DNA of 64,000 nucleotides from Blepharisma stoltei ATCC 30299 (GCA_965603825.1 CBFDEM010000022.1:124001-188000), one strand, 5' to 3'; shown: positions 27,116 to 64,000, counted from the first letter of the stretch. Translations and numbers: made by a program. Notes: generated from the letters alone by a model not told the origin.

Positions 27116-27255
27116 TGATAAATAATTCACTTAATATTAGCCTTATATCTACTCTTCCTTAGGTTCTGCATTTTTCTGCTTATTTTCTATTACTTGCCTT
27201 ATCATTTTTAAATTAATTCATCAATAATTTCATCTCGATCTAAATTATTTCAAAA

Positions 27256-28971
27256 ATGGTAGATCGAGACCAGAAAATCCAAGTGATAGTCCGCAAACGG
27301 CCTCTAAACTCTAAAGAAAAGGCACGTGGAGAAATAGATATTCTTTCTCAGCGGTCACCTCAAACAATTGTAGTCACTGAGGAAAAAGTAAAAGTAGATT
27401 TAACCAAATATATAGAGGAGCATCATTTCACATTTGACGGTGTATTCAGTGAAGACATCACAAACGAACAACTTTACCGAGCCACAGTCCAGCCAATAGT
27501 CCAAGCTGCATTTCAAGGCGCAAAAGTTACATGTTTCGCATACGGACAAACAGGGAGCGGAAAAACATACACAATGATGGGAGAAGCTCAAACTCCAGGC
27601 TTATATCTGCTAGCGGCTAATGACCTTTTTTATTACCGAGAGCAGCTTTATCCAAATATAAAACTCTGGGTATCTTTTTATGAAATTTATTGTGGGAAAC
27701 TTCATGATCTTTTAAATGAAAGACAAATACTGCATGTCAGAGAAGATGCCAAGCAAAATGTGAATATCGTCGGACTACAATATAAACCAGTGGAAGATGT
27801 ACAAACTTTAATGCAAATTCTCAGCTTTGGCCTAGCTGCAAGGACAACAGGGACGACAGGAGCAAATGAAGATTCGTCAAGATCACATGGGGTTTTGGAA
27901 ATTTCGCTTAGAGAAAAGCGAAAAGCAGTCGGAAAGGTTACATTTATTGATCTGGCTGGAAGTGAGAGAGGAGCTGATACCCAGAATTCTGATGGAAAAA
28001 CAAGAATGGACGGAGCAGAGATCAATAAGTCACTGCTAGCCTTAAAAGAATGTATAAGGGCTTTGGATCAAGATAAAAAACATACCCCATTCAGAGGAAG
28101 TAAGCTTACTTTGGTGCTTAAAGACTCTTTTGTAGGAAACTGCAGGACTGTTATGATTGCTAATGTTTCACCTGGGATTACAAGCTGTGAGCATACATTG
28201 AATTCATTGAGATATGCAGATCGAGTAAAAGAGCTGAAAAAAGGAGGCGGAGGAAGTGCAGCAGCTACAAGAGGTGCTGATCAGCTTGCAAATATTCTTA
28301 TGCTTCCAAGACAAAATGCTAATGTAGTGAGATATGTAAAAAGTGGCGAAGAAGAGGAAGAGGACGAAGATATCTCGCCGAGAGTTGCAAATAATGCGCC
28401 AAAAATCACAGTCAAAGAAGACTCTGATCGGCCTACATCTAAAGGAAATGGCACTAAGCCTGCAGCTCCTCATGAAAAGCCAAGAAGCAGAATTGGAGGT
28501 GGCTTCACATCTCCAAAAACTCAGCGAAACTTGGCCCCTCCTCAGCCCCAGCCTCAGCCTCCAGCTCCTACTGCAAACCATATATTTGAAGAAGCCCAAA
28601 ATATGGACCTTGAAGAGCTTACTGCAACCCATGAGAATCTTATCGGGATTATTTTGACTGAAGAAGAACAACTTATTAATGCACATAGGAAAACCATTGA
28701 TGACATGGTAGATGCAATTAAAGTGCAAATGGCGCTCCTTAGCGAAGTCGATAAGCCAGGAAGTGATGTAGACCAATATGTATGTGAGCTAGACAAAGTG
28801 CTGGCTATGAAAGAAGAGATGATAAGAGGCCTTCGAAAGCAACTGAAAAACTTTAATGATCATTTGAGACAGGAAGAAGCAATGGCTGCTGCTTTCAATG
28901 CTCGAAAGTCAGCTATGGACGTATTTGATTTGGAGGCTCCTGATGGAGATTTACTGCAAGATATGTGATAG
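27256..28971 (+). CDS. Kinesin-13 family microtubule depolymerase
   Basis: VRKRPLN, KVKVDLTKY, GQTGSGKT, SSRSH, DLAGSER, LKECIRAL; with TGA=Trp it ends at the adjacent TAG. Confidence 0.95.
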
Positions 28972-33900: not shown

Positions 33901-34183
33901 TTGCGAATGAATATATAAGTGTCAAACATTTGATTATTAATTTAATATAATGGTACCAATTATGAATATATTTAAAATAAGTTCTTATGGCTTTAGTTGT
34001 TAGGAATCATTGCTCAGGTTAGCTATTTTCTTATTTTATTATATCAGTCTGCTTCCATTTAATTAATCAGCCCTGAATCCTAAAAACCCTCTGTATCATT
34101 AATATATTTAAAATATCCTCACGCAAAATCTAATACAACAATAATTCTCCAAAAATTCAATAGCTCGAATTTATAAAAAAATC

Positions 34184-36541
34184 ATGAGCGTTCTTGGCCC
34201 TGACCAAAGTATTATTTCTTCTCACATCTCTTCACGAAGAAATTCATTACGGCCTCTTGACGAAAATATTTCAGATAATGAAGATATCGTTGGACAAATG
34301 CAGCAAGGCGCTTCCAATATCCTTGTCGCAGTCAGATGTAGGCCACTTACCAAAAAAGAACGAGAAATCGATAGCACAAATTTGATTCAAATAATTGAAG
34401 AAAGAGTAGTCATACTAATGGACCCACAATTCAAATACGGTGACAAAGGCAGCCGAGCAAAAGAAAAACAATATGCGTTTGATTTTGCATTTGATGAAAA
34501 TTCATTGCAAAAAGAAATTTTTGACAAAACCACCAAGTTCTTAATCGATGGGATCCTTAATGGTTTCAATGCAACAGTTTTTGCATATGGAGCCACAGGT
34601 GCAGGAAAAACCTATACAATGCTTGGTGAAGCTGACAGCCCTGGAATGATGTTGATGACTTTTGTTGAACTTTTCACAAAGGTGGAAGAATTGACGCTAG
34701 AAAGAGCTTATAAGGTAAAACTGAGCTATTTGGAAATTTATAATGAAGTCGTCAAAGATTTGATACATCCCACAAGCAGTGTACTAGATATTCGAGAAGA
34801 CCCAGTCAAGGGAATTGTGGTAGCTGGACTTGCTGAAATGATTGCGACCACTCCAGATGAGGTTATCGAATGCATTCAGTTAGGAAATATGAGGAGAACT
34901 TGTGAACCGACTGAGGCAAATCAGACTTCCAGCAGATCTCATGCAGTGCTACAAATCACTGTGGAGTATAAAGATAAAGCTGCTGGGACTCAATCTGAAA
35001 TTATTGTTGGTAAACTGTCACTTATTGACTTAGCTGGATCTGAAAGAGCTTCTCATACAAAAAACAGAGGAATTCGGCTTATTGAGGGTGCAAATATCAA
35101 TAAATCTTTGCTAGCTTTAGGTAATTGCATAAATGCATTATGTGAAGCTACAGAAAGAGGTGGAAAAGTTTATATCCCATATAGGGATTCAAAATTGACT
35201 CGTTTGCTCAAAGACTCCTTAGGCGGAAACTGCAGGACTGTTATGATTGCTTGCATTTCTCCATACTCAGGAAGTTTTTTTGACACATCCAACACTCTCA
35301 AATATGCAAATCGTGCAAAAAATATTAAAACCAATCTACACAGAAACGTTGTAAACGTGTCATACCACATCGCAAAATATACAGCCATTATTGCACAGCT
35401 CAGACAAGAAGTTTCTGAATTAAGGAAACAATTAAAATCTAGAACCCCTAACCCTACGGTATTTAATAATGAAAAATTCCAAATTGAGCTTAATACACAT
35501 TTCCAAGAGGAAGCAAAAATAAGGAAAAAAATATATGAATGCCAACAGACAAAAGAAGAATTAGGATTTATGCTTTTTGAGAAGCAGGCAGAAATGAATC
35601 AAGCCAAATCGAAAAATGGAGAAGAAAATGCTGGCTTTAAAGCACTGAATAGAGAGGTAGAAAGACTAAAAAAAGCAATTGAGGAGCAAAACCAAATAAA
35701 TGGAAATTATGAAGAAATGCTTAAAGGGCTTGAACATAAAAGAGATGATATCAAGCAAGAATGAATAAGAAAAGGAGTCCCTGAGCCTTATTTATCAAGC
35801 TTACAGCTTATGATGCAGCAGCAGATCTTAGCTATGAATTCTATTGATGCACAAAGAGATAAAAACCATGAGCAAGTAATTTTAAAACAAAAAGACCTAT
35901 ATATAGAACTGCTAAAGAGCCAGCTAAGATTGAGAGACAATGTGATCGAAATCCAAAACGAAGTTTTCAAAGAATCAAAAGTAGAAGTCAAGCCTGGCCT
36001 TAAAAAGATTTACAGTCAAATTCAAAGCTTAGAAGAAATAAACTCTTCATCAATTGTATCATTTCCAGAACTTCATGGAAATTCTCGTTCAACAAACCAC
36101 AGATCTAAAGCAAAAACCTATAAAACTGACCATTTTTTGCCACCTATAATCCATATCCCTGCAAATAAAACTCCGGCCTCTGTAACTCCGTCAAGAATCC
36201 CCAGGATAAACTCAAAACGGTATTTATCAACTGAACAGAAATCAGAGCCTCCAAAATCTTCAAATGTAAATTTATTACACCCTAAGGCTAAAAGGCTTAT
36301 TCAAAATGATGCAAAATTTAAAGAAAGGTCTCGGACAAACTCAGGGTATTTTGATGAGTCTGATTCTGAAAAATCGACAGCCAAGCAGATGCCATCAATG
36401 GTAAAAGTCTCAGATCGTAGCCAAAAAGGCCATTATGCTGGACAAAAAGTAAAAGATGAAAAGCATTTGGTCAAGAAGAGAATCAAGCCAACTGAAATTA
36501 AGTACGGAATCAGCATTAGAGGGATCGAAACATTTGTGTAA
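34184..36541 (+). CDS. Kinesin-8 (KIF18/KIF19-like) motor (785 aa)
   Basis: VAVRCRPL, NATVFAYGATGAGKTYTM, SSRSHA, DLAGSERA, EGANINKSLLALGNCINAL, TLKYANRAKNI; two ORFs joined over TGA. Confidence 0.92.
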
Positions 36542-47375: not shown

Positions 47376-49652
47376 CTAATTATGCCTATAATAAGAAAGA
47401 GACTCCAACCACGTTTGCTTTTCAGGGAGCTGGCCGTCTAAAGGTGGCAATGTTTCTATTTGATTTATGATTTTTTGGACTGTAGATTTGGTTAGTTTTT
47501 GTGAAGCAAGCAGAGGTCTTGGGTTCATCACTTTTAAAACTGCATATAAGTCTTTGGGGTTTTTGATAACTTTTAATACAGCTTCTTCAAATTCGCCTTT
47601 GGCAAGGAGAACGTTGACTTCTTCTTGGATCCTTACTGTCTTCTTTTCTCCGCCCAAAGCAATTACTCTTTGATTCATCGTTTCTTCACACTCTTTTAGC
47701 TGATTCATATGCTTGTTGCAGCTTTCTGTAAAAATCTTAATAATGTCGTCAAAAAGTGTGAGCTTGCCTTCGTATTCTCTATTAATTATTTCTAATTCGT
47801 GTAATAAATTTGAGTCTTTTTCATTGAAATCTTTTATTCCAGCATCGAAATTTTGGGTGACTTGAAGCAAAATTTCATTGACTGAGCTTTGGAAAGCTGG
47901 GGTTACTGTTGAGTCTGAAGCTTCTTTGGTTTTAGTTTTTACAACTTTTGTGGTGTTTTTGAGGTTTTCTTCGAAAATGCTGTTGCTTCAGTCTTGAATA
48001 GGAGTTTTTACCCAAAGCAGTTTGCTTAAATTGTTTATTTTGTCTGAAACTTTATTCATTTTCAGCTGGACAATGTCACACATTTTGTCAATCATTGAGT
48101 TTTCGTCTGGTTCTTTTTCAATTGGCTGTTCTGGCTGAGGGACTATTATAGCTTTTGATTCCTCTTCTTCTCCTAATAATGAATAGACAGAAATGCCCGT
48201 TCTATTTATTACTGAAAACCGATTTGAGCCTGATAAAGCAGCTATTGCTATATTTGAGCTAAGTTTATAGTCAATGATAGACGAGAACATCAAGCAGTCA
48301 TTGATTTCTGAAATATTTACAAGACTTATGAACGGATCATTAATTCCTGCTATTAAAATCGATTTCCCTATCACAGATATTTTTTTGTGTGTCATTGATT
48401 GTATTGCCAAAGTATGCAATTTCGTCTGATTCTCAATGCTGAATATACAAAATTCATTTTGTGATCTGCCTGATGTTAACAAATAAGTATTAGTCAAAAA
48501 ATTAACGGTGATATTAGGAGAATACATCATTGTGTTATAAGTGTGAGGATTTGTATTGAAAATAGTGTTTTCGTCACTTATAGTGACAACCAGGACTTTT
48601 CCTTGGCCTAAAGCTACAGCTAATAAATCTGGATTATTAGGAGCTAGAGCAATACTGAGAATTTTAGCTCCAAAAGAAAGGACTTTAAACCAATCAGGAG
48701 CATTAAGGGAAAATGAATTTTTCCAAATCATGACTGTAACTTCAGACGCAGAGTGACTTGCAAACATATTTTGCTCAGTAGGATGCCACACAATTCCTTC
48801 TACTGTCCCATCCACAACATTATAAGAAAATAATATTGTGAAGTTAGCGAGGTCTACAATTATAATCTCTTTTTTCTCAACAGCGTATATTAAAATATTG
48901 GAATCTTGTCTTATATCAATAGTTGTAATATTTTTAATACTCTGAGTATAAGATGCTTTTAGACTTGGCAGCTCAAATTTGTATAATATGCTTTCTTTAT
49001 AATAGCAAAGTGTTGATAAATTGCTGGCAATTTGGATTTGTTCACCTTTATAGGGATGTGGAAGTGAATTTAAAGGCTCAAAAATACTGACATCTGTAGA
49101 TGGCTTGTATGATAAAATAGTTTGGCTCGTATCTAAATGATAGAAGCTTGACTGAAGTCCTTGAGGTTCAGGGAGTGGAGCAATTCTTTTAACATTAGAT
49201 TTATCTGCGGAGAGTTCAAGAGTTTTAGAGTCTTTAAGGGCAAGAGCTAAGGTAGACACTGACGTTGTCATATTTTTAATATTTTTGTGACTCAAAAAAT
49301 AAAGCAATGACACAAACCCTTGTGGATTTTTGTTGATCATAGATAAAAGTTTCCCATTATTCTTCAAATTATTATCAATGAAATAAGACTCCAGCACTTT
49401 TTGTAAATTTTTTAAATGAGCTTCTAAAACTTGGCAGGAAGTTTGGCTAAACTGCTCAAGAGAAATATTTTCACTTTTGAGTCCATTGACAATTTGCACT
49501 GAAATTTCACCTGGAACTTCCATTTCTCTACAGACCTCTTTGGCTAGATTTTGTATGTCGTTTTCACTTAAGAATGGTATAGAGTATAAGCCTCTTGAGT
49601 AGCATTTCAGTATAATTTCTTTTAAATCTCTTCCCATTCCTTGGATTTCCAT
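47376..49652 (-). CDS. La-motif + WD40 + EDC4/Ge-1-like helical protein (758 aa)
   Basis: Two same-frame ORFs joined over TGA at 47988-47990; La-motif-like segment, WD40-like repeats (IVWHP, IALAP), EDC4-like PAFQSSVNEILLQV. Confidence 0.7.
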
Positions 49653-51419: not shown

Positions 51420-53525
51420 TTATCTTACTATAAGCCCTTTCATGGACCGAAGTTGTGACATGATACTTTTTTGGTCTTCTTCATCAATATTGAACTCTTT
51501 TAATGTGCTTTCATATATATCAACGTAAAACCAGAATTCTTTTTCTGTTATTCCTCTTCCTTGATGGTTTTTTCTAACAGCTCTTCGAAACTCTAGGCTT
51601 ATTCTTCCGTTGAAAATTTTGAACATCCCAGAGACGATCATTTCAAAATCTCCCATTCTTGTATTTTTGAAATACCTATTTAATGTATCATTAGAAAGGA
51701 TTTTATTGTATAATGACACTATAAGCTGGTTTCAAAATGTGACTCCACCGTACTTCTCGACTAAATTTTGCTTTTTTATTTTAGATATTTGCATGTTCAT
51801 AGCCATTTCATCGAAGTTGTCAATTGCGTCACGAAGAGCCCTTTGTGCACAGGCTATGCTTTTTTCGTCAAGTCCTGATAGAATCATACTTTTGGTAGGT
51901 TTTCTTGTATAACTATTGAAGACTGGGCATTGTGGACTTATCATAGAATCACTACGAGGGTTGCGTTTTTGATAATATTTGATTGAGTCTTGCTTAAAAT
52001 CTTTTAGGCAAGCTGGAGGTTTCTGAGTGTTTATTTGGCCAAGTCTTTCGTTGACCTTTGAAACCCTCTCCACAAAATCGTTATCATCACTTGGATGCTG
52101 CTTTTCTTTCTTGCTTTGTTGCTGTGGTTTGAATTTAAAAGGCAAAGGGGTATTAATTGGCTTATCTTCTTCAATATTTGCCTTTTTAGTCTCTTGCCGA
52201 GAAATTCTGTGCTCAGTTTCAACATCAGTGAATCTTGAAGTTGAGCCTACAGAATGAGACCTTCTTGAAAAGTCAAGCTTTTTTTGAGGTCGTATCGCTT
52301 TCTCAATACCCAGCGAAAATTTAAAATCAATGAGCTGCTCTCTGCAGCCTAAAAACACTCAGCCATTTTTTTTGCTTTGAATAAAGTCACAAACAATTCC
52401 TTTTAAAGTCTGGTGCGGAAAAATATCAGTTGTAAGAAAAGTAATAATTTGGTTTATCATAGCATCCACTTCAGGGATTTTCATAAATGTTTCAACTGCA
52501 TAGCAGCTTTCTGAGTCATTTGTGTTTATTATCAGATCTTTGTTAGACTCTTCTTGAAAGATATGCACCCTTGTAATACTTTCTGGGTTTCGGTTAGAAT
52601 CAGTGTCTTTTTCATCTTTAGGAATTTCAGAAAAAGATTGGGACAGTGAAAATCCTTTCGGCTCAGCGTCACATTCATGCTTTGGGATGCTTAAGAAAGA
52701 TTTTGATAATCTGGGGAGTTTTGAACAACTTCCTGACTTCTTTTTGAGCTTGAAAGGATTATTAATTGACTGGGTAGTTGGGAGAAGCATATTTGTGTAC
52801 TTAAAATCCGATAAATTGCTGAATGACTTATTTCTGTTATTTATTCCTTTTTTATATCTTGTTCGATTTTGTACTCAACTGTTGCTATATTTGTTTTTAT
52901 TAACAATTGAAAAATAACGATTTTTTAAATCTTTTTTCCATAATACTCTTATTATTGATACAGGATTCGACCTGCACTGAATATACCTTTGCATAATAGC
53001 TTGTCCATCAAAAGAATTCCAAATCTCTTCTGCACTCTCCCCTGAAAATGCTAAAATTGTATCTTTGTTGTGGACCCGATAAACAAATGATGGGTACTCT
53101 CCATCTTCTTTATTTTTTATGCAATTAAAAAATTCGCTCTTATTTATCAGTGGTTTTGACTGTACTGAGCCATCTGGAAGGGTTTGGACTAAATATGAGC
53201 TAGATGACTCATCATTTCTAATAAGAGTCAAAGGAATATTTATATTTATTTTTTGTCCTGAATTCATCTTTGCCAGCAAAGAAAAAATATTAAATCGGAT
53301 AATTTGAGACTGCTTGGGTAAAAGACTGTTTATTTTGGTCACATAATTATTTTGTGTAAAATCTGAGACAGAAATATTATGCTTACCGACACCTCGAAGG
53401 TAACCTTTTTTGTATGAGTCGTGGATTAAGGATAATAAATCCTCTCTGAAGTTTGTGATCTCATCTCTTTCCATAGCATTTTTGTGGTAATCCTTTAAGT
53501 CCTCTAATATACCTGAAACTTGCAT
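51420..53525 (-). CDS. ATP-grasp-like + truncated globin fusion, paralog 1 (701 aa)
   Basis: Four same-frame ORFs separated by TGA; C-terminal LVEKYGG..F[W]..SLYNKIL..YF..RKNHQGRGITEKEF. Confidence 0.85.
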
Positions 53526-54127
53526 TTTATTTTATTTTTTATAAGATTTTTAAGGTTTTTTTAATTGAGTTAGTGTTCAGTAGTCCAGCAAATTAAGATA
53601 AGTTGAATTATTAATTAAGAATTTTTGCGAATCCTTAATAAATAGGAGTGATAATCAATATGAAGTTATATTGTTTTAAATTATTGGTGAATAAGCTTAT
53701 TTGTAACCTAGAATAACTTTAAATTAAGCAAAAAAAGATTTAGAATAGTTAAAGATTTCGCATAGTTTATATGTGAAATATATATTCATAATATTTGATC
53801 TTTGCATTTCCTAATTAAAGTATAATAAAGTTTAAAACTAAAAGATTAAGCGATGGATTTGACATATTAATATACTAAAATGAAAATTTTTATCGATGCA
53901 ATATATAAATCTGCGCCTGCTTATTGGATAATAAAGTCTAACTAGAAGATCAAAAATATTATATTCCCCTCGCTTTATTATAAGTTATTCTTATTAAATC
54001 AAATTCAATTGCTAAAAATGCTTGTATTATTGCTTCAAATATTTTAAGAATGCTTTAAGGGCCAATTACTCCACATATATCATATAAATGCATGATTATT
54101 TCAAATGAAATATAAATATATCTTAAG

Positions 54128-54406
54128 ATGATTGGTGTAATGAAATCACAATCAATTGATCAGTCATTAAGCAAGCTACAGAAAAGCGGCGAAAGTGAAA
54201 GTCCAAGGCTGCAACATCCCCAGCTAAAACGAACAAACACAGACCAAAATATTGACACTTCATTTAATAATCATCAAGCTGAACAAATTCGAATTCTGCC
54301 TCCTGCATATCAGTATTCAAATTATGCCACTACAAATTGAGAAGAGGAGGATGATATTGATCCTTATGAAGAAATTAATAAATCATGACAATGCTCTCTA
54401 TTATAA
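54128..54406 (+). CDS. Putative 92-aa protein ending in a CaaX motif (CSLL)
   Basis: ORF 54128-54340 continues over two TGA as N[W]EEEDDIDPYEEINKS[W]QCSLL*. Confidence 0.6.
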
Positions 54407-54560
54407 TGCAGCAATTAAATATAACCCTTTTCTATTTTAATTTCAATCTAATATTGCAGCATTACTATGCAATTTTGAATATGAGAGAAATAGTGCAGTT
54501 TTATCATTAATCTAATGAAATAAAATATATTTTTAAATAAATAGCTAAAAATTTGATACA

Positions 54561-56651
54561 TTATCTGCATATTAAGCACTTCATTGATTTAATCTGCTTC
54601 ATTATCAGATACCTATCGTCTTCATCTACTTCAAACTCCATCAGCGTCTTCTCAAAGAGCTCAGAATATGAGTTATACTGTATTTCATTTATTCCTCTAT
54701 TAAGATGTGACCCCCTAACTTTTCTTCTAAACTCCAAGCTCACATTGCAATTGAAAATCTTAAACATCCCTGTGACGATCATTTCAAAATTGTCTAGTTT
54801 ACAGCCTTTAAAATGAGTCTACAAAACTTCACTTGCTAAAACTTTGTTGTAAAATGACAAAATAAAGCTATTCCAAAACTCATCCCCTCCATATTTCTCT
54901 ACTAAATTTTGTTTCCTCATCTTCGCTATTTGTGTGTTAAGCGTCATCTCGTCAAAATTGTCAACAATATCTGAATAATGCTTTTTTGTCATATAGTGGC
55001 ATTTGTCATCCCATAAAGATTCTTTTATATTAGTTTGGGTTCTTTTTTTATAAAGGGGAGAAATCGGACTTGAATTTTGTGTATCGCTGAGCTGAGAAAA
55101 CGAAGTATTAATAGGGAATGGATGTGGGCTTTCACTTTGCATTAAATTTGAGGTAGCTGCTCTTATCATTTTTTTATTTATAATTTGGTCCACTTTTTCA
55201 TTAACTTCAGCACATCTTTTTACCAATTCTTTTTCATTATTTATATGAGGCTTCTCATTTATAATCATTTTTGGTTTTATTTTGAATTTTGGGAGTGTTT
55301 TTTCTTCTTTTTTCTCTTCTTCAAATAAAATCTCTTTAGGAGACGAGTCTTCTATTTTGATTTCTTCATCTTCCTCAAACGAGGTATTTTTTTTGCGCAT
55401 TACAAGTGATCTACTTCTTTTGGACTTATGTAGGCTTGGGATATTGATTTTTTTCTTCTCAATTCCTGTGTTAGTGTCTGCTAAATATTCTTTGCAGTCA
55501 AGCAGAAATCAGTTATTATTTCTGTCTTGAAGAAAATCAAGGACGATAGCTTGAAGAGTATTTTTAAATACTTCGGTGTTTAAAAACTGTACAACTTGAT
55601 TAACCATGTTTTCAATTTCTGGGATTTTTACGAGTGTTTCGATAGCATAACAGCTATCTGAGTCTTTGGTGGTGACTATGAACTCTTTATAACTTCCTTC
55701 TCCTATAATTCTTGAAAGCTCTTCAGTTAAGTTTCGTCTCTGATACAAGCTGTCGTCATCTTTTACTGTCATTAGTGGAGACACATTTCCACTAGGGCAG
55801 CTTCTTAGCTCTTGTTTTGGGAGCTCTGAAAATGAATTATTTCCAGAAGTCTTCCGCTTTAAAGGAGTTCTGCATTTCCTAATCTTATATGGATTATTTA
55901 ATGACTGAGTAGTAGGCAGCATCATATTTCTATATTGGAAATCTGAAATATTTATTGTTGAGCTTGATTTCTTATGGGTTGGTTTTTTTGCTTTCACTGA
56001 GCTAATTTGAGATTTAATTTCTTGTTTTGTTCTATTGACAATATTATAATACTTGTTCTTAGAGCCTTGTTTTCACAAAACTCTCGTAATACACACAGTA
56101 TTGGATCGACCTAAAATATACTGCTGCATGAAGGCATTGTCTTCTGAGTTATTTCATAGCTTTTCTGCGCTTTCAATGGTAAAAACAGCAATTGTGTCCT
56201 GCCCAGGAACTTTATAGCAAAATAATGGACAGTTGGAGTCGTTTTTCTTCTGTGTTAGATATAAAAAATCTTCACTTGTACAGGCCTTTGATTGTATACT
56301 TCCTTCTTTTTTGGTATGAATTATATATGGAACTTCTTCGACCTTTATTAGAGTTGTAGGAACATTAACATTAATTTTCAGTTTACTAGAAAATTTCGCA
56401 AATAAGGAAAACAGCTTTAACCTTGGGCTGAACTCGGATTTTGGAAGCAAGTTGTTGATCTTTGAAATATAGCAATTTGAATTGCTATCAGGACAAAGCC
56501 GATTACCAAGATAAGCACCTCTTAGTCCTACTTTCTTGGAAAAATCGTGGATAAAGGTGATTATGTCTTCCCTTATATGAGTAATTTCATCTCTTTCAAT
56601 TGTACTTTGGTGGTAGTCTTTAAGGTGCTGCAGGATTATTGGTACTTCCAT
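54561..56651 (-). CDS. ATP-grasp-like + truncated globin fusion, paralog 2; in-frame TAG at 54819-54821 (truncated or pseudogene)
   Basis: Colinear with the paralogs; three TGA=Trp; one TAG inside the globin domain. Confidence 0.75.
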
Positions 56652-56900
56652 TATTTTACTTTACTTTATAAGTCTAATAAATGCAAAGAGCCAGTAAATC
56701 TGTGTTTTAAAGATATGTAAAGGGTTCTATTGGCTTAATTTAATTTATCCTTAATACTTATCTAAAATTTCAAGCAAGAGGCCAATTAAATCTCTCCATC
56801 ATTTAATTTAAAATTTGACAATATTTTCCTCAAATAATATCTTTCCGAATCAAAATTTAAAAATAAAATTATTAAATAAAATAGCAATCGTTTACAAAAT

Positions 56901-58901
56901 TTATTTGCATATCAAACATTTCATAGATCTAATTTGCGTCATAATTATTTGACGGTCTTCTTCCTCAATCTCAAATTCTTTCAAAGTGCTATAAAAAGTA
57001 TTCGCATAGCAGTCAAAATCCTTTTCTGGGATTTTAAGATTTTGATGGACAGATCTTACAGATCTTCTGAATTCTAATGTAGTATTTCCATTAAAAACTT
57101 TAAACATGCCTTGTATGATCATGTTCATGCTTGTGCACATAAAATACTTGCTCAGTGAGCTGTTTCCGATCAGCTTTTTATAAAGCGATATTATAAATTT
57201 ATTTCAAAATTCATCCCCTCCATATCTTTGTATAAGTTCTTTCTTTTTGACTTTCATCAGATCGCATTGTATTTTCATTTCATCAAGAGAATCGCTGGTC
57301 TCCGCCAAATGTCTTTTAGCATGATCATTGACTTTATTTACAACCAAAGCGTTTTTAGGATTTCTGCCACTTTTTTGATTAAATACTGGGCATAGTGTCT
57401 GTAAAGACTCATGATAGTTGGAAGCTTTAGCAGTTTGATCAAAAGTAGCATAAGCATTAAGGTTATATCTCATTTGATATGCTTTTATGCTTTCCTCTTT
57501 GAAATCAACACTTTTTAGCTGTTTTACTGGCTTAAGATTCACTAAATAGTCAATTTTTTGGTTCACTTTGGTGCATCTCTCCAGCAAATCTTTATCGCTT
57601 GCAATCATCATTGTGCGGTTCTGTTTTGGGTTGCACTTAATTTTAAAAGGCAAATTAACCTCAATGCTTGGTGTTATACATCTCATTGACTCTAATGGAC
57701 GGTCAATACTTTCATTAGAGTCTTCTTTCATTATTTCTTGGCTGTTTTCAGAGTATGATCTTATTCTGCTAGGAGTAACAGTTTTTGATTGCCTGATCCT
57801 TGGATTGCAGTATTCTATTGGAGAGCTATTACTTGTTGTATATTCTTTGCAAGATAGGAAAACCCATTTTCTATCTTTACTCTGAATAAAATCTAAGATC
57901 AAGCCTTTTAGTTTTTCCTCTTTGCAAAAATAATGATTCAAAAATGATACAATTTGATCGACCATGTCATCAATTTCTTGAATTTTTGGCTTATTTTCGA
58001 TTACAAAAAAATCTTCGCTTGTATTTGTATTTACAAAGTAAGTTTTGACAGATTTTTCACTTTGAATAAAAGTTTCAGATCTTGTCCCCATTAAATTCCC
58101 AGTTATTTTAGTGCTAAAAGAAAGGCTGCTTTTCTTGATTGGCTTTTGTACAGCTTTAATGCGGTATGGGTTGTTAAGAGACTTCGTAGTTTTCAGCATC
58201 ATATCGGTGTACCTGAAGTTAGAAAGGTAAAATGAATTACTTTTGTCAGGGCTTTGGCTTAATGTCTGAGTATTTCTCTTTTTGCTTCTTTTAACTAGAG
58301 ATTGCTTTAACCTACTTATGATCGAAAAATATTTATTTTTTCTCCCAAATTTCCAAAGAACCCTTGTTATAGATGCTGGGTTGGAATGAGGGCATATAAA
58401 GTTTTGCATCATTGTTGCTTCATTATGAGAAAATCTTCAAATTTTTTCAGCAGTTTCTGCTGAATATATGAATTCTGTTTCTTTTTGAAATACTTTACAG
58501 CAGAAAATTGGAATATTCTCGTCAATTTTATTTTGGCTGAGGGCGAAAAATTCAGAATCTAGGCATGGTTTTGAGCAAACTTGACCATTTTTCTTAGTCC
58601 ATAGCATATGATTAAGCTGGGTTTTTCCATCCCTAATCATACTTTCAGGGATGAGAATATTTAAACCGCTAATATTTGAGTAGACTGTTAGTAAACTATA
58701 AAAATCAAGCTGACTGCCGTTAAAAAGTTTCGGTAATGAGTTGGCAAAAGAAGAACTTTTAGATGCTTGGACTGAGTCTCTGAATAAGGATTTAATGGGG
58801 CTAACGCTTGAAGTACTTTCTGAACACAGAGAAATTTGGTCCTCATTCTCGAATTTTTCAATTCTTTCTTTGGCTCTATGAATAGAAACGACTGGCTCCA
58901 T
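56901..58901 (-). CDS. ATP-grasp-like + truncated globin fusion, paralog 3 (666 aa)
   Basis: Three same-frame ORFs separated by TGA; MQNFI..ITRVLW, GLILDFIQSKDRKWVFLSC, RYGGDEF[W], RSVHQNLKI. Confidence 0.85.
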
Positions 58902-59467
58902 TGTTTACAAAATCTTGTTAAATATAAGGTAATTGATTTCCATTTTAAGGTTAAATAATCCCCTTTAAAAGCAAGAAATCTAAGTTTATACTCTCAAATA
59001 ATAATAAGATTCATAAAAATATTTATAATTTCACCATTACTGCAATATGGAAATGTGTGGAATTTTCTAATAAATGGATTTTCAATAAAAATGTTCAGCA
59101 AATATCCTTATTGTTTGCAAAAATTCTTATTCCTTGAAATGTAGAAATAAAAATATTTTTGAGTCATATTAAACTTAAAAAATCTTTGTTATTTTTCTAT
59201 AAATTTGTATAGGTATTTTTGGTGCTGTTAAAGATGATATGAAGATGATTCATATCAGTTGTACAGCAAAAATAATTAAAAAATGGATTTCTGATTGAAA
59301 ATTGAAAGATTTCAGATTTTTATATCATTTCTTAGGTATGGTTATTGATCAAAAGTAAGGATTTTAACGTTATAAATGTTAAAAAGAGGGATGAATAGCG
59401 ATAAAGATAATAAAGACTTTTATTAAAAAGATTACTAATAATTTTAAATTTAATTAATATCCAATTT

Positions 59468-61579
59468 TTATCTAGCAACTAGTCTCTTCATAGATTTTAC
59501 TTGAATCATAATTAGATTCCTGTCTTCTTCTGATACACTGAAATCATTCAAAGTGTTGACAAAAATATCAGCAAAGCAATCGAATTCACTCTCAGTAATC
59601 CCAATCTTCATATTCGCATGAACTGCACGTATCTTTCGTCGAAATTCTAGGTTCACGCTTCCTGAAAGAATTCTAAACATCCCAGAAACGATTTTTCCAA
59701 AATTTTCTAAATTCGTATTTTTAAAGTGTTTTTTAAGCATCTCAGTTGACAACACTTTTCTATAGAAAGACAGTATAAACTGATTCCAAAACTCTGTCCC
59801 TCCATATTTCTCCACTAAATTTTCTTGTTTCTTTTTCGCAACTTTAACACTTGTCACCATTTCGTCAAAATTACTTACAATATTTACATAGTGTTTTCTA
59901 ATATGGGTATAATTATTATCTTTCCATAAGGATTTACTTTGAGACTGGCATTGTGGTGGGGAATCATTTTTTTGCTTGAAGATTGGCGAAAAGAACTGTG
60001 CTCCATATAAAATAATATTATTTTGGATATTATCATGAGGACTTGTTGTGCATTCTGTATTTTTCCTACTCGGGGTTTCATCTGTATCTACTTGAGATCC
60101 ATTGGTTTCTTCATTATCGGCTATTTTTGTATGGCTTAAATCTATTAGATCAATTTTACAAGCTTCATTCCTTAACGTATTTTTTTTTGAAATTCCTTTA
60201 TTTAAATTTGAATTTCTAAAAATTACATCATGCTTGAAAATGTTGTTAACAGTTAAATTCGCTTCAGCTGTGATTAGCAAATTCTGTGTTGACCTTGATC
60301 TTTTTGTTGGTTCTAGTTTTTGCATTTTTGTTGTATTTATATTTAAATCTGCTTCAGTTATATAATCTTTACAATCTAGCAATACCCACTTGTTTTCTGA
60401 GTCCTGTATAAAATCAGCTATTATCCCTTTAAGTTGATTATGACTTGTAAAAAAGCAGGAATTCAAGAAAGCAACAATTTGATTTATCATGGCTTCAATT
60501 TCTGGTGCTTTTTTATAGCTTTCTATCGCATAACAACTTTCAATATCTTTGGTAATAACAAAATATTTTTTATTTTCTTCTTCTTTTATTACATTTGAAG
60601 CTACATTTATATGAGGCAAAACTTCTTTTTTTGGGGAAATTCTTTCATTTGAATCTGCTCTTTTGCAGTCTTTTTTTATTTTTGGAGGAGAAAAATAGGA
60701 TTGGGAGTGCTGGACGTTCATCAATTTGATGCCTGGATATGGTATATAGCTTAATCTTCTTTTTTTGATTTTGAGGGTTTTGAAATCAGATGCATCTGAA
60801 TGGGATCGATTTCTACTATGGGAAGGTATATGGAAATTGTTATCAATTTTAAGCAGTTTTTCATCACATTCAGTTATATCGGTATTTGATCTGCTTCTCC
60901 CACGAAAGGGATGAGATTGGCTACTTGAGGTATTTTGACGTTGTACAGGGTACTTATTTTTATTTATTATTATGAAATATTTGTTTTTCATATTTTTCCT
61001 CCATAGGACCCTTATTATTGTGGTGGGATTGGATTTTAGATCTATGAAGTGTTGCATTATTGATTTCTCTGAAGCCTTTTTTCATTCTGAAATTGCAATA
61101 TCTTTAGAAAATATTGATGTTATATCTTCATTTTCATGCTTTAAGCAGCACAATGGAAAAGCTTTATTGGATTTTTCTTTTTTAAGATCGAAAAATTCTG
61201 TTTCGTTACATTTTTTTACAGAGACCTGTCCGCTGCCATTTGTAAAGATTAAATATGACTGAATATCCATTTTTCCTAATTTTAGAAGGGTTGTTGGGAT
61301 ATTTATTTGACATTTAAAATCATTTGCATGCATTGCCAACAGTTTGTGGAAGCTAATTTTAGCATTAGCGTTTGGGAGCAAGCTATTTATTCTCTTAATA
61401 TAATAATTTTGGCTTGATATAGGATTGCTAACCCCATCTATTTTTACTCCTTTCAAGAGACCTTTCTTCACAGAATCAAGTATAAAATTATCTATATCTT
61501 CTTGGAAGATGGAAATTTCCTTAAGAAAACTTTCATTTTTCAAGTCTTTCAAAATCACTGGCAATTCCATCGTTTCCAT
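59468..61579 (-). CDS. ATP-grasp-like + truncated globin fusion, paralog 4 (703 aa)
   Basis: Two same-frame ORFs; MQHFI..IIRVLW, GIIADFIQDSENKWVLLDC, KYGGTEFW..SFY, RAVHANMKIGITESEF. Confidence 0.87.
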
Positions 61580-62455
61580 TTGGATTTTATAAAGCTTAGA
61601 AATAGAAAATGAGCAAATTTTTTACGGTTTAAAATTGAGAAAATTAAACATAAAGAGGAAAGTATTATGAATTTTGACTTAAAGAGGCAATTGCTTGAAA
61701 TAACTCCTTTTGGAAAATCCCTTAAGTGCATATATAAACTATTTAAATCTTATTTGGAGCAAAAATATCCTTTCTTTCCTTTTTATTTAAGTATTGTAAG
61801 ACCTATTTCCCATTCTATCAATATAAACACATCTCAATATATCATTATATATCATATAACGACGCTGAGTTTTAATAATAAGAAGAGCCATTGGACCAAT
61901 TTCTTCAATTTTCTTAAAACTCAATTATATATTTTGCATGAGAATTCGTCCTACCCATGGATAATTTTAGCTTAATAATATTTGAGACCAAATTTCCTTA
62001 ATTTTGCAAGCAATACTGATGCTTCATGAACCCCTTTTTGCGTCTTGATTCCAATTAAAATCAAGAGGATTGATCAGTATGGCGTTAAAATTATGGGTTT
62101 AATCCTGATTAAAGAAAACTCAAAGAAATTAACAGCATTGTGATCCAAATTCTGTATTATTGAAATTAAGTTAGATTCATTGAAATAACTTATTATAGTG
62201 AGCATTAATTAATGCCTTTTTAGTAAATAAATATTTTGATAAATAGTGTTATTAAACATTAAAAAAAAATCATTTTTGTAAAAATATTCATCTTAGCAAT
62301 AGTTAATGCTATTTAAAAGAATAAAATACATTCTAAAGAGTTTAAGCTATAGTTTATTTTAAATAAAAAATCCATATTAATTTTATTCAAAAAAATCATT
62401 TACTGACTTTTTTATTTATTGAAAGAAAAATAAAAATAATCATAGAAATATTTAT

Positions 62456-64000
62456 TTAATGTGATTTGCATACCAAACATATCATTGATCTGATTTGTGA
62501 CATAATAAAAACTTTATCATTTTCTTCTATTCGAAATTCATCAAGTGCTTCTTCCATTTTATCAAGAAACAAATTAAACTCTTCTTCTAAAATTCCTAAA
62601 TTTTGATGAATCGTTCTAATAGACCTTCTAAACTCAAGTGACACATTTCCACTGAAAACATTTCGTAGCCCTGATAAAATCATTTTTTGATTCGAATCTT
62701 CAAAACGTTTATTTAATTTGTTTTCTGAAATAATTTTTTGAAAGAGTTTTACAACGAATTTATTTCAAAATTCATCTCCTCCATATTTAGAAACGAAATT
62801 TTGGTTCAAAGAAGTATTCTTGGAATTTAATTTCATTTCATCATACAATTCTACAATGTCTGAATAGTGTTTTTTGGTGAATGCATGACTTTCATCATTT
62901 CATAGCGGTTTATTTCGTTGAGCTTTGTGTCTTGATAATAAATTGTGTTGCAGGCAGGGAAATGAAGGTTTTAAATAGTCTGACTCGTTAGGAGATGGAG
63001 TCTGTGATTTTGATTTTTGTGATATTGAATTTATACGATCATTGTAAATGTTGATACATTGATCTTTAATTGAACAGTTTGAGATTGGAGGAAGGTGATT
63101 TTTTTCAATAATTTTATCGATCTTTTCTGATACTTGAGAGTATCTTTTAAATAAATCTTTTTCAATGGGCTCTGATATTTCGATAGCTGGGCAAATTTTT
63201 GACTTTTTCAGAGATAGCTGCCTTGGTTTGATACTTCTAAAAACATCATTTGGCATATTTTCTGTTTTTTGAATAAAATTGCTTTCTTTTGGTTCGTTTT
63301 CTTCTAAAATATTAATTTTTAGTTCAGGATTACTCTGTGTTCTTTGATGATGGATAACTTTAGAGTTTTTTCTTTTTAATCCTTCTGTGTCTTTGCTTTC
63401 AATTGAGCATTCTTTGCAATCAAGTAGAAATCATTTTTTGTCTTTGCTTTGTATAAAGTCAAGCACAATTCCAGAAATTTCTTTATTCGCCAACACCTTA
63501 CTATTTAAAAACTCAACTAACTGAGAAATCATTCCTTCAATTTCTGTAGTTTTAGCTTTATAGTCAAATGTAAAGCAATCTTCAGGCTTTTCAGTTGTCA
63601 AAATTAGCTTGGTTTCATTTTCTATTTCATTATTAATTTCTTCTAGGGTATTATCGTCATTTAAAAATTGCGATTCTTCTTTTTGCTCTTTTTTTTCCTT
63701 TCTTGACTTCCCAACAACTAAGGATTTGCTCCTTTCTTTTCCTCTTTGCTGGACTCTAAAAGGATTATTAATTGATTGCGATGTTTTTTGCAGAAAATCT
63801 GTGTATTTGAAATTTGCATATTCTGATGAGGTGTTTTTCCTATGGAATTTATTATTTGCTGAATTTATTTTTGGGTTAATTCTTGGACGGCTTTTTATTT
63901 TATTTCTTTTTATTATAGTAAAATACTTTGTTGGCTGCCCAAGTCTTCATAGAACTCGAGTGATTGATATTTGATTAGTCCTGCACTTAATAAACTCTTG
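62456..64000 (-). CDS. ATP-grasp-like + truncated globin fusion, paralog 5 (5' end beyond window)
   Basis: QEFIKCRTNQISITRVL[W], GIVLDFIQSKDKK[W]FLLDC, KYGGDEF[W], RTIHQNLGI. Confidence 0.85.

Follow-up and report, generated by a model that had tools for sequence, protein, structure and literature searches.

Tandem arrays of DC4-like ATP-grasp/truncated globin fusion genes in Blepharisma stoltei encode candidate haem-based gas or redox sensors

DC4 is a docking-complex subunit with similarity to ATP-grasp proteins: it sits on DC1/DC2 and contacts the outer dynein arm alpha (ODA-alpha) heavy chain, and cells that lose it swim more slowly (PMC7617938). Proximal and distal paralogs of DC4 exist, as do orthologs in other flagellated species including Chlamydomonas (PMC11971395). 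Globin-coupled sensors, in turn, join an N-terminal 3/3 S-family globin to a methyl-accepting chemotaxis protein (MCP), kinase or cyclase output (PMC7475203). Here we describe genes that may combine features of both. At the end of a 64,000-nt stretch of Blepharisma stoltei ATCC 30299 DNA (CBFDEM010000022.1:124001-188000, referred to below as the window; coordinates are those of the window unless a contig is named) lie five co-oriented, intronless minus-strand paralogs of 666-703 aa, g1 to g5, in which a predicted DC4-like ATP-grasp domain precedes a C-terminal group I truncated globin (Table 1). The fusion family is real, old, expanded and apparently undescribed; its function we infer. We consider it probable, judging by sequence and predicted models, that the fusion is a haem-based gas or redox sensor with a non-catalytic, DC4-like binding output.

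The preliminary description of the window had recognised at least five co-oriented paralogs of about 700 aa hidden by TGA fragmentation, and this is what we find. Pairwise identity among g1-g5 is ~27-41%, with BLASTP E <= 3e-38 for every pair, far beyond chance. The five are the first members of a 15-gene array (contig C22, 175-213 kb), about 25 kb of which lies past the window edge, and a second array of 16 genes (C58, 651-690 kb) is collinear with it. In the 41.46 Mb assembly of 64 contigs a single-protein query matched 49 loci and an N-terminal profile 58 loci at E<1e-48, with roughly 25-30 further weak matches; the genome holds about 50 core copies of the fusion gene. The use of UGA for Trp in B. 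stoltei has been published together with its 41 Mb genome (PMC9942806). TGA is Trp in the fusion family as well: at four conserved Trp columns in 36 paralogs TGA and TGG alternate (20/13, 16/20, 16/20 and 13/23), by which we reject a frame or genetic-code artefact. The motifs quoted earlier were all recovered in the order given, with the exception of g2, where A replaces G in the GxxxDF motif.

Both domains belong to one protein. A single frame runs through 36 complete paralogs, and one probable-RNA contig (54718-56500) follows g2 from the ATP-grasp region through into the globin; a separate globin gene is rejected on these grounds. Three such runs cover the bodies of g2 and g3 and the end of g4, with zero or near zero coverage between genes; the runs are only guessed to be RNA and, as contigs, give neither strand nor level. 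The in-frame TAG of g2, which had gone unmentioned before, is a polymorphic nonsense allele: codon 611 reads TAT (Tyr) in two of the three probable-RNA runs and TAG in one, and the DNA run has TAG. Of the sites at which the g2 alleles differ, 19 are synonymous and 5 of other kinds, the stop being one of the 5, and with differences mostly synonymous we reject g2 as a general pseudogene.

The best-matching pairs between the C22 and C58 arrays have saturated synonymous divergence (dS), and nonsynonymous divergence (dN) of the globin is 0.09-0.21 in most pairs. Old paralog pairs likewise show globin dN of ~0.1-0.3 at dS of ~1 or more (mostly saturated), with linkers changing faster. Because the best-matching inter-array pairs combine saturated dS with low globin dN, the arrays must be old, with purifying selection acting on them; with the arrays collinear in addition, recent neutral amplification is rejected. 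Two adjacent array members (C22, ~188.9 and ~191.7 kb) are 92% identical, a recent duplication within an otherwise old array.

The C-terminal domain had been called a group I truncated globin, and the fold model, a profile match and the kept His F8 and CD1 Phe all agree with this. The AlphaFold2 (AF2) model of the g1 globin gives Z-scores of 15.1 to 6BME and 14.6 to 3AQ5 (THB4, 3AQ5 and HbN all score 14-15), and lower ones to group II and III truncated globins (12.2 and 10.5). A profile of 22 paralog globins matches the Tetrahymena truncated haemoglobin (trHb; 3AQ5) at E 3e-8, group I truncated globins being the sole matches. In a quick tree, in which deep forks are unsettled, the core globins of Blepharisma form one group (support 97, one long-branch outsider included), set off from the single-domain and multi-unit ones (support 94). 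The genome also encodes seven single-domain truncated globins, three of them in tandem (C54:165910-168007) and one (L004) apparently without the proximal His.

Of 86 family members, 85 retain His F8 (37/37 Blepharisma copies) and 69 retain CD1 Phe (36/37 in Blepharisma), so that the globin domain likely binds haem. Could the proteins instead be structural axonemal or cortical subunits, with the globin a haem-free or constitutively liganded structural domain? DC4 is itself structural, distal residues drift, and a recognisable globin has been lost in at least three DC4-like B. stoltei relatives (P0061, P0093 and P0124). However, His F8 hardly varies in a family with an overall identity of 20%, a constraint that a haem-free fold would not require, and the Stentor coeruleus family member SteCoe_12330 is absent from the examined files of a Stentor dissection proteome; we regard this explanation as very improbable.

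The distal pocket is less uniform. Tyr B10 occurs in 42/86 family members, in 33/37 Blepharisma copies versus 16/57 others, and G8 is Tyr or Phe (Tyr in 30/37 Blepharisma paralogs). The distal network of Tyr B10 with Gln E7/E11 was not found: a profile alignment, whose E-helix register may be wrong by one position, pairs Gln46 and Gln50 of the Tetrahymena trHb with Phe and Val, and three residues are missing there in a third of Blepharisma copies. The fusion proteins contain no reductase domain. Because the pocket appears mostly hydrophobic, varies among paralogs and lacks Gln E7/E11, the globin would report oxygen (O2), nitric oxide (NO), carbon monoxide (CO) or iron redox state rather than store O2 or turn over NO, and ligand properties probably differ among paralogs. 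On another view the ATP-grasp half serves only as an anchor for targeting, holding a catalytic or buffering globin (a scavenger of NO or reactive oxygen species, or an O2 store) at the cilia or cortex, with no signal passing between domains. The long disordered linker and the lack of confident packing between domains would fit, the Tyr B10 and Tyr G8 of most Blepharisma copies could hold O2, and Chlamydomonas THB1 has been detected in flagellar extracts (PMC4304232). Yet the Tetrahymena Gln pair is replaced by Phe/Val, Tyr B10 is in the minority outside Blepharisma, and the seven single-domain globins could do that job. Furthermore, what we take to be the long-tunnel positions of HbN are bulky here (Phe, Trp, Phe). 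This makes the anchor explanation unlikely.

The kinship of the N-terminal half with DC4 had not been seen in the preliminary description, which had called that half ATP-grasp-like without the usual ExN. Over residues 71-404 the g1 model gives VIA Z-scores to DC4 of 18.0 (9E78_5K; root-mean-square deviation (rmsd) 3.6, 224 aligned) and 16.7, and 11.2 to the next ATP-grasp protein; identity to DC4 is 14% (Foldseek E 1e-8). An isolated domain model of a compact distant relative, with a predicted local distance difference test score (pLDDT) of 88 and a predicted template modelling score (pTM) of 0.85, behaves alike: DC4 is best in Foldseek (E 8e-10 vs 5e-5 for the next family) and in VIA (Z 17.2 and 15.7, then synapsin at 11.4). 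DC4 is the top match in all four PDB fold searches, and the Foldseek and VIA matches listed for the domain model are DC4 or ATP-grasp-type proteins, TTL/TTLL included. Against PDB sequences, a 70-sequence profile has one match, Leishmania distal DC4 (E 0.0012), with the QxFI-RVxW and F-L-C segments in order; a second N-domain profile adds the IPxT segment (DC4, E 0.005) and, weakly, T. brucei TbDC65. Pfam gives no family for this domain, and ESM Atlas returns no more than unnamed ciliate and oomycete clusters along with generic ATP-grasp and globin ones. The nearest solved structure to the modelled domain is therefore DC4 and not a ligase, which is newly recognised here; from profiles and models the domain is a homolog of DC4, not a demonstrated ortholog. 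This closeness to an axonemal docking subunit changes the likely output.

The fold searches agree with the ATP-grasp assignment, and the ExN positions are variable in 86 members, with K, D, G, S or N at the Glu position and K or R at the Asn position. Other site residues are kept: Lys150 (K or R) in 72/86, Gln179 in 81/86, Arg193 in 71/86 and Asp380 in 73/86, as well as Phe/Tyr181. The equivalences come from motif order and predicted secondary structure rather than from residue-level superposition, and the ATP-grasp position labels lean also on what we take to hold for TTL and Ddl. Since Asp380 aligns with Tyr in DC4, the family keeps more of the site than DC4 does, and this, together with the TTL/TTLL fold matches, would suit an active, divergent ATP-grasp enzyme (a peptide or tubulin ligase, or kinase-like) regulated by the globin. 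The substitutions at ExN, the indirect residue equivalences and the Pfam ATP-grasp families, which match 0/70 members, speak against such an enzyme, and we judge it decidedly unlikely. Positive charge marks both the first lobe and the insert (mean net charge +10 and +9). This would be compatible with microtubule binding, although such charge is common in AT-rich genomes.

The family extends beyond Blepharisma. An exhaustive profile search recovered 57 further distant proteins with the N-domain and globin at 20-29% identity; word-based homolog searches missed most of these distant members. They include SteCoe_12330 of Stentor coeruleus, also present in a Stentor mRNA table, and two divergent B. 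stoltei genes. The rest come from eukaryotic environmental contigs that are gene-dense, have 33-54% GC and use the standard code, one carrying a tandem array of four. We infer that these contigs are from heterotrichs, and go no further because a tiny-intron count that might have placed them there was uninformative; among 30 proteins looked up, no named hit outside heterotrichs carries the fusion. The profile search also returned environmental proteins with 5-8 tandem truncated-globin repeats (P0090, P0101, P0107, P0113, P0133, P0155).

How might such a sensor work? The polypeptide is predicted to begin with a short N-terminal helix, followed by the DC4-like ATP-grasp domain and the basic, disordered insert within it; a linker, disordered for the most part, and a long helix then lead to the globin. 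The globin would bind haem b via His F8 in a mostly hydrophobic, paralog-variable distal pocket, and its state would be relayed to the ATP-grasp domain via the pre-globin helix, or by freeing the tethered globin, altering partner binding by the DC4-like domain. With ExN lost, that domain is probably a protein-binding module, in line with the binding role of DC4, and may still hold nucleotide. Ligand range, stage or cell region would differ among the many old paralogs. Judging by DC4 kinship, the target would most likely be the ciliary or cortical microtubule/dynein system. A more specific and rather doubtful proposal is that a DC4-type docking subunit became a haem sensor in heterotrichs, placed on outer dynein arms or on other arrays of microtubules and dynein: paralogs on different cilia or ciliary zones would then tune beat directly by O2, NO or redox state, bypassing membrane signalling.

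A number of points weigh against the sensor interpretation or its dynein target. Identity to DC4 is 11-16%, and the dynein target hangs on kinship with one characterised family at the 14% given above; the true DC4 ortholog may sit among the roughly 25-30 loci of the genome with a weaker likeness to DC4 (e.g. C37:140826, C5:78935, C18:80200). The full-length g1 model has a pTM of 0.51, with ~150 linker residues between the domains, and so shows no inter-domain contact. Single family proteins fall just below the Pfam Bac_globin (PF01152) cut-off (g4, 20.5 bits vs 21, E 5.6e-4), one paralog rising above it at 26.2 and 16 of 22 paralog globins matching at E<0.1. To these add the possible one-residue shift of the E helix and a weak negative: SteCoe_12330 is not in the examined supplementary files of the Stentor dissection proteome and of a regeneration study. 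Sensing and haem binding are predicted from sequence and models, and a ciliary localisation is proposed.

Ciliates position themselves in oxygen gradients, and we know of no molecular sensor established for this behaviour; the fusion family, old and heavily expanded, offers a concrete candidate. The globin fusion is invisible to Pfam in most members, and DC4-type domains, described as trypanosomatid docking subunits, also form a large offshoot in ciliates. Were the proteins axonemal, haem chemistry would act straight on a dynein docking module, a possible route by which the ciliary motor could be reached by oxygen, nitric oxide or redox state. The earlier statement that ciliate trHbs are small single-domain proteins is incomplete: chimeric and multi-unit T1 globins have been detected in ciliated parasites according to a review that does not name their partners (PMC7475203). 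We found no published description of the DC4-like/globin architecture in a search that covered few subscription journals.

Table 1. Fusion genes of the window and their mapped parts
Feature	Position	Strand	Details
g1 intact fusion gene	51420..53525	-	701 aa
g1 DC4-like ATP-grasp domain (predicted)	52320..53318	-	aa 70-402, interrupted by low-confidence (pLDDT) basic insert ~aa 213-329
g1 long helix into globin	51777..51866	-	aa 554-583, helix by DSSP with D-E-M conserved; candidate for transmitting the signal
g1 group I truncated globin domain	51423..51770	-	aa 586-701; Tyr B10 606, Phe CD1 619, His F8 654 (codon at 51566)
g2 fusion gene	54561..56651	-	696 codons; ATP-grasp 56444-55470, globin 54911-54564
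g2 in-frame TAG, codon 611	54819..54821	-	just ahead of CD1 Phe
g3 fusion gene	56901..58901	-	666 aa; ATP-grasp 58733-57825, globin 57242-56904 with 3-residue deletion ahead of E helix
g4 fusion gene	59468..61579	-	703 aa; ATP-grasp 61375-60347, globin 59824-59471
g5 3' part	62456..64000	-	691 aa complete, start ~64531, past window edge; globin 62803-62465

No upstream motif common to the family genes was found. Between g1 and g2, on the opposite strand, lies an open frame of 92 codons, two of them TGA (Trp) (54128-54406, +), and the g4-g5 spacer contains a less AT-rich stretch (~61840-62210, -) that reads as decayed coding sequence with stops. Elsewhere in the genome the family forms a convergent gene pair (C55, ~351-355 kb), and an extra, inverted globin-end copy is found at C58:840011. 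Two genes downstream of the array is a WD40 protein (47376-49652, -) that matches a La domain, at the Pfam cut-off, close to the N-terminus; further away, two kinesin motor genes (27244-28968 and 34145-36541, +) stand ~7 kb apart with a Na+/H+ exchanger in between.

Compared with trypanosomatid DC4 (dDC4/pDC4; PDB 9E78/9Y6S chain 5K, and 9E5C chain 7c, TbDC65), the family has the same ATP-grasp variant, both being without ExN, and shares the IPxT, QxFI, RVxW and F...L.C motifs in order; it adds the ~100-residue basic insert, the C-terminal globin and Asp380 (Tyr in DC4), and numbers ~50 copies against 2-3. TTL/TTLL, synapsin, Ddl and RimK resemble it in fold (Z 8-11.4) and motif order, whereas the family is without the catalytic ExN and has no sequence-level match to them. 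With group I trHbs (Tetrahymena 3AQ5, M. tuberculosis HbN, Chlamydomonas THB1/THB4) the globin shares the 2/2 fold (rmsd 2.0-2.8), GG after helix A, CD1 Phe, His F8 and, in most Blepharisma copies, Tyr B10; unlike them, it is the C-terminal domain of a 500-720 aa protein, lacks the distal Gln, has an aromatic G8, and carries a longer helix (EFRR) in place of the EF motif. Androglobin, a chimeric globin linked to motile cilia across eukaryotes, with a Tetrahymena homolog included (PMC13331133), sets a precedent for a ciliary globin fusion, but its architecture (calpain, permuted globin, IQ motif) is unrelated and it has no homology to the family. Globin-coupled sensors (HemAT, DosC, AfGcHK) likewise join a globin to a putative output and provide the proposed working logic, but the eukaryotic family has a C-terminal 2/2 globin and a pseudo-ATP-grasp domain, and the g1 globin model scores Z 9.5-10.4 to the three, against 14-15 for T1 globins. 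If the sensor interpretation holds, the family would work like a globin-coupled sensor while standing outside that group in globin class, domain order and output.

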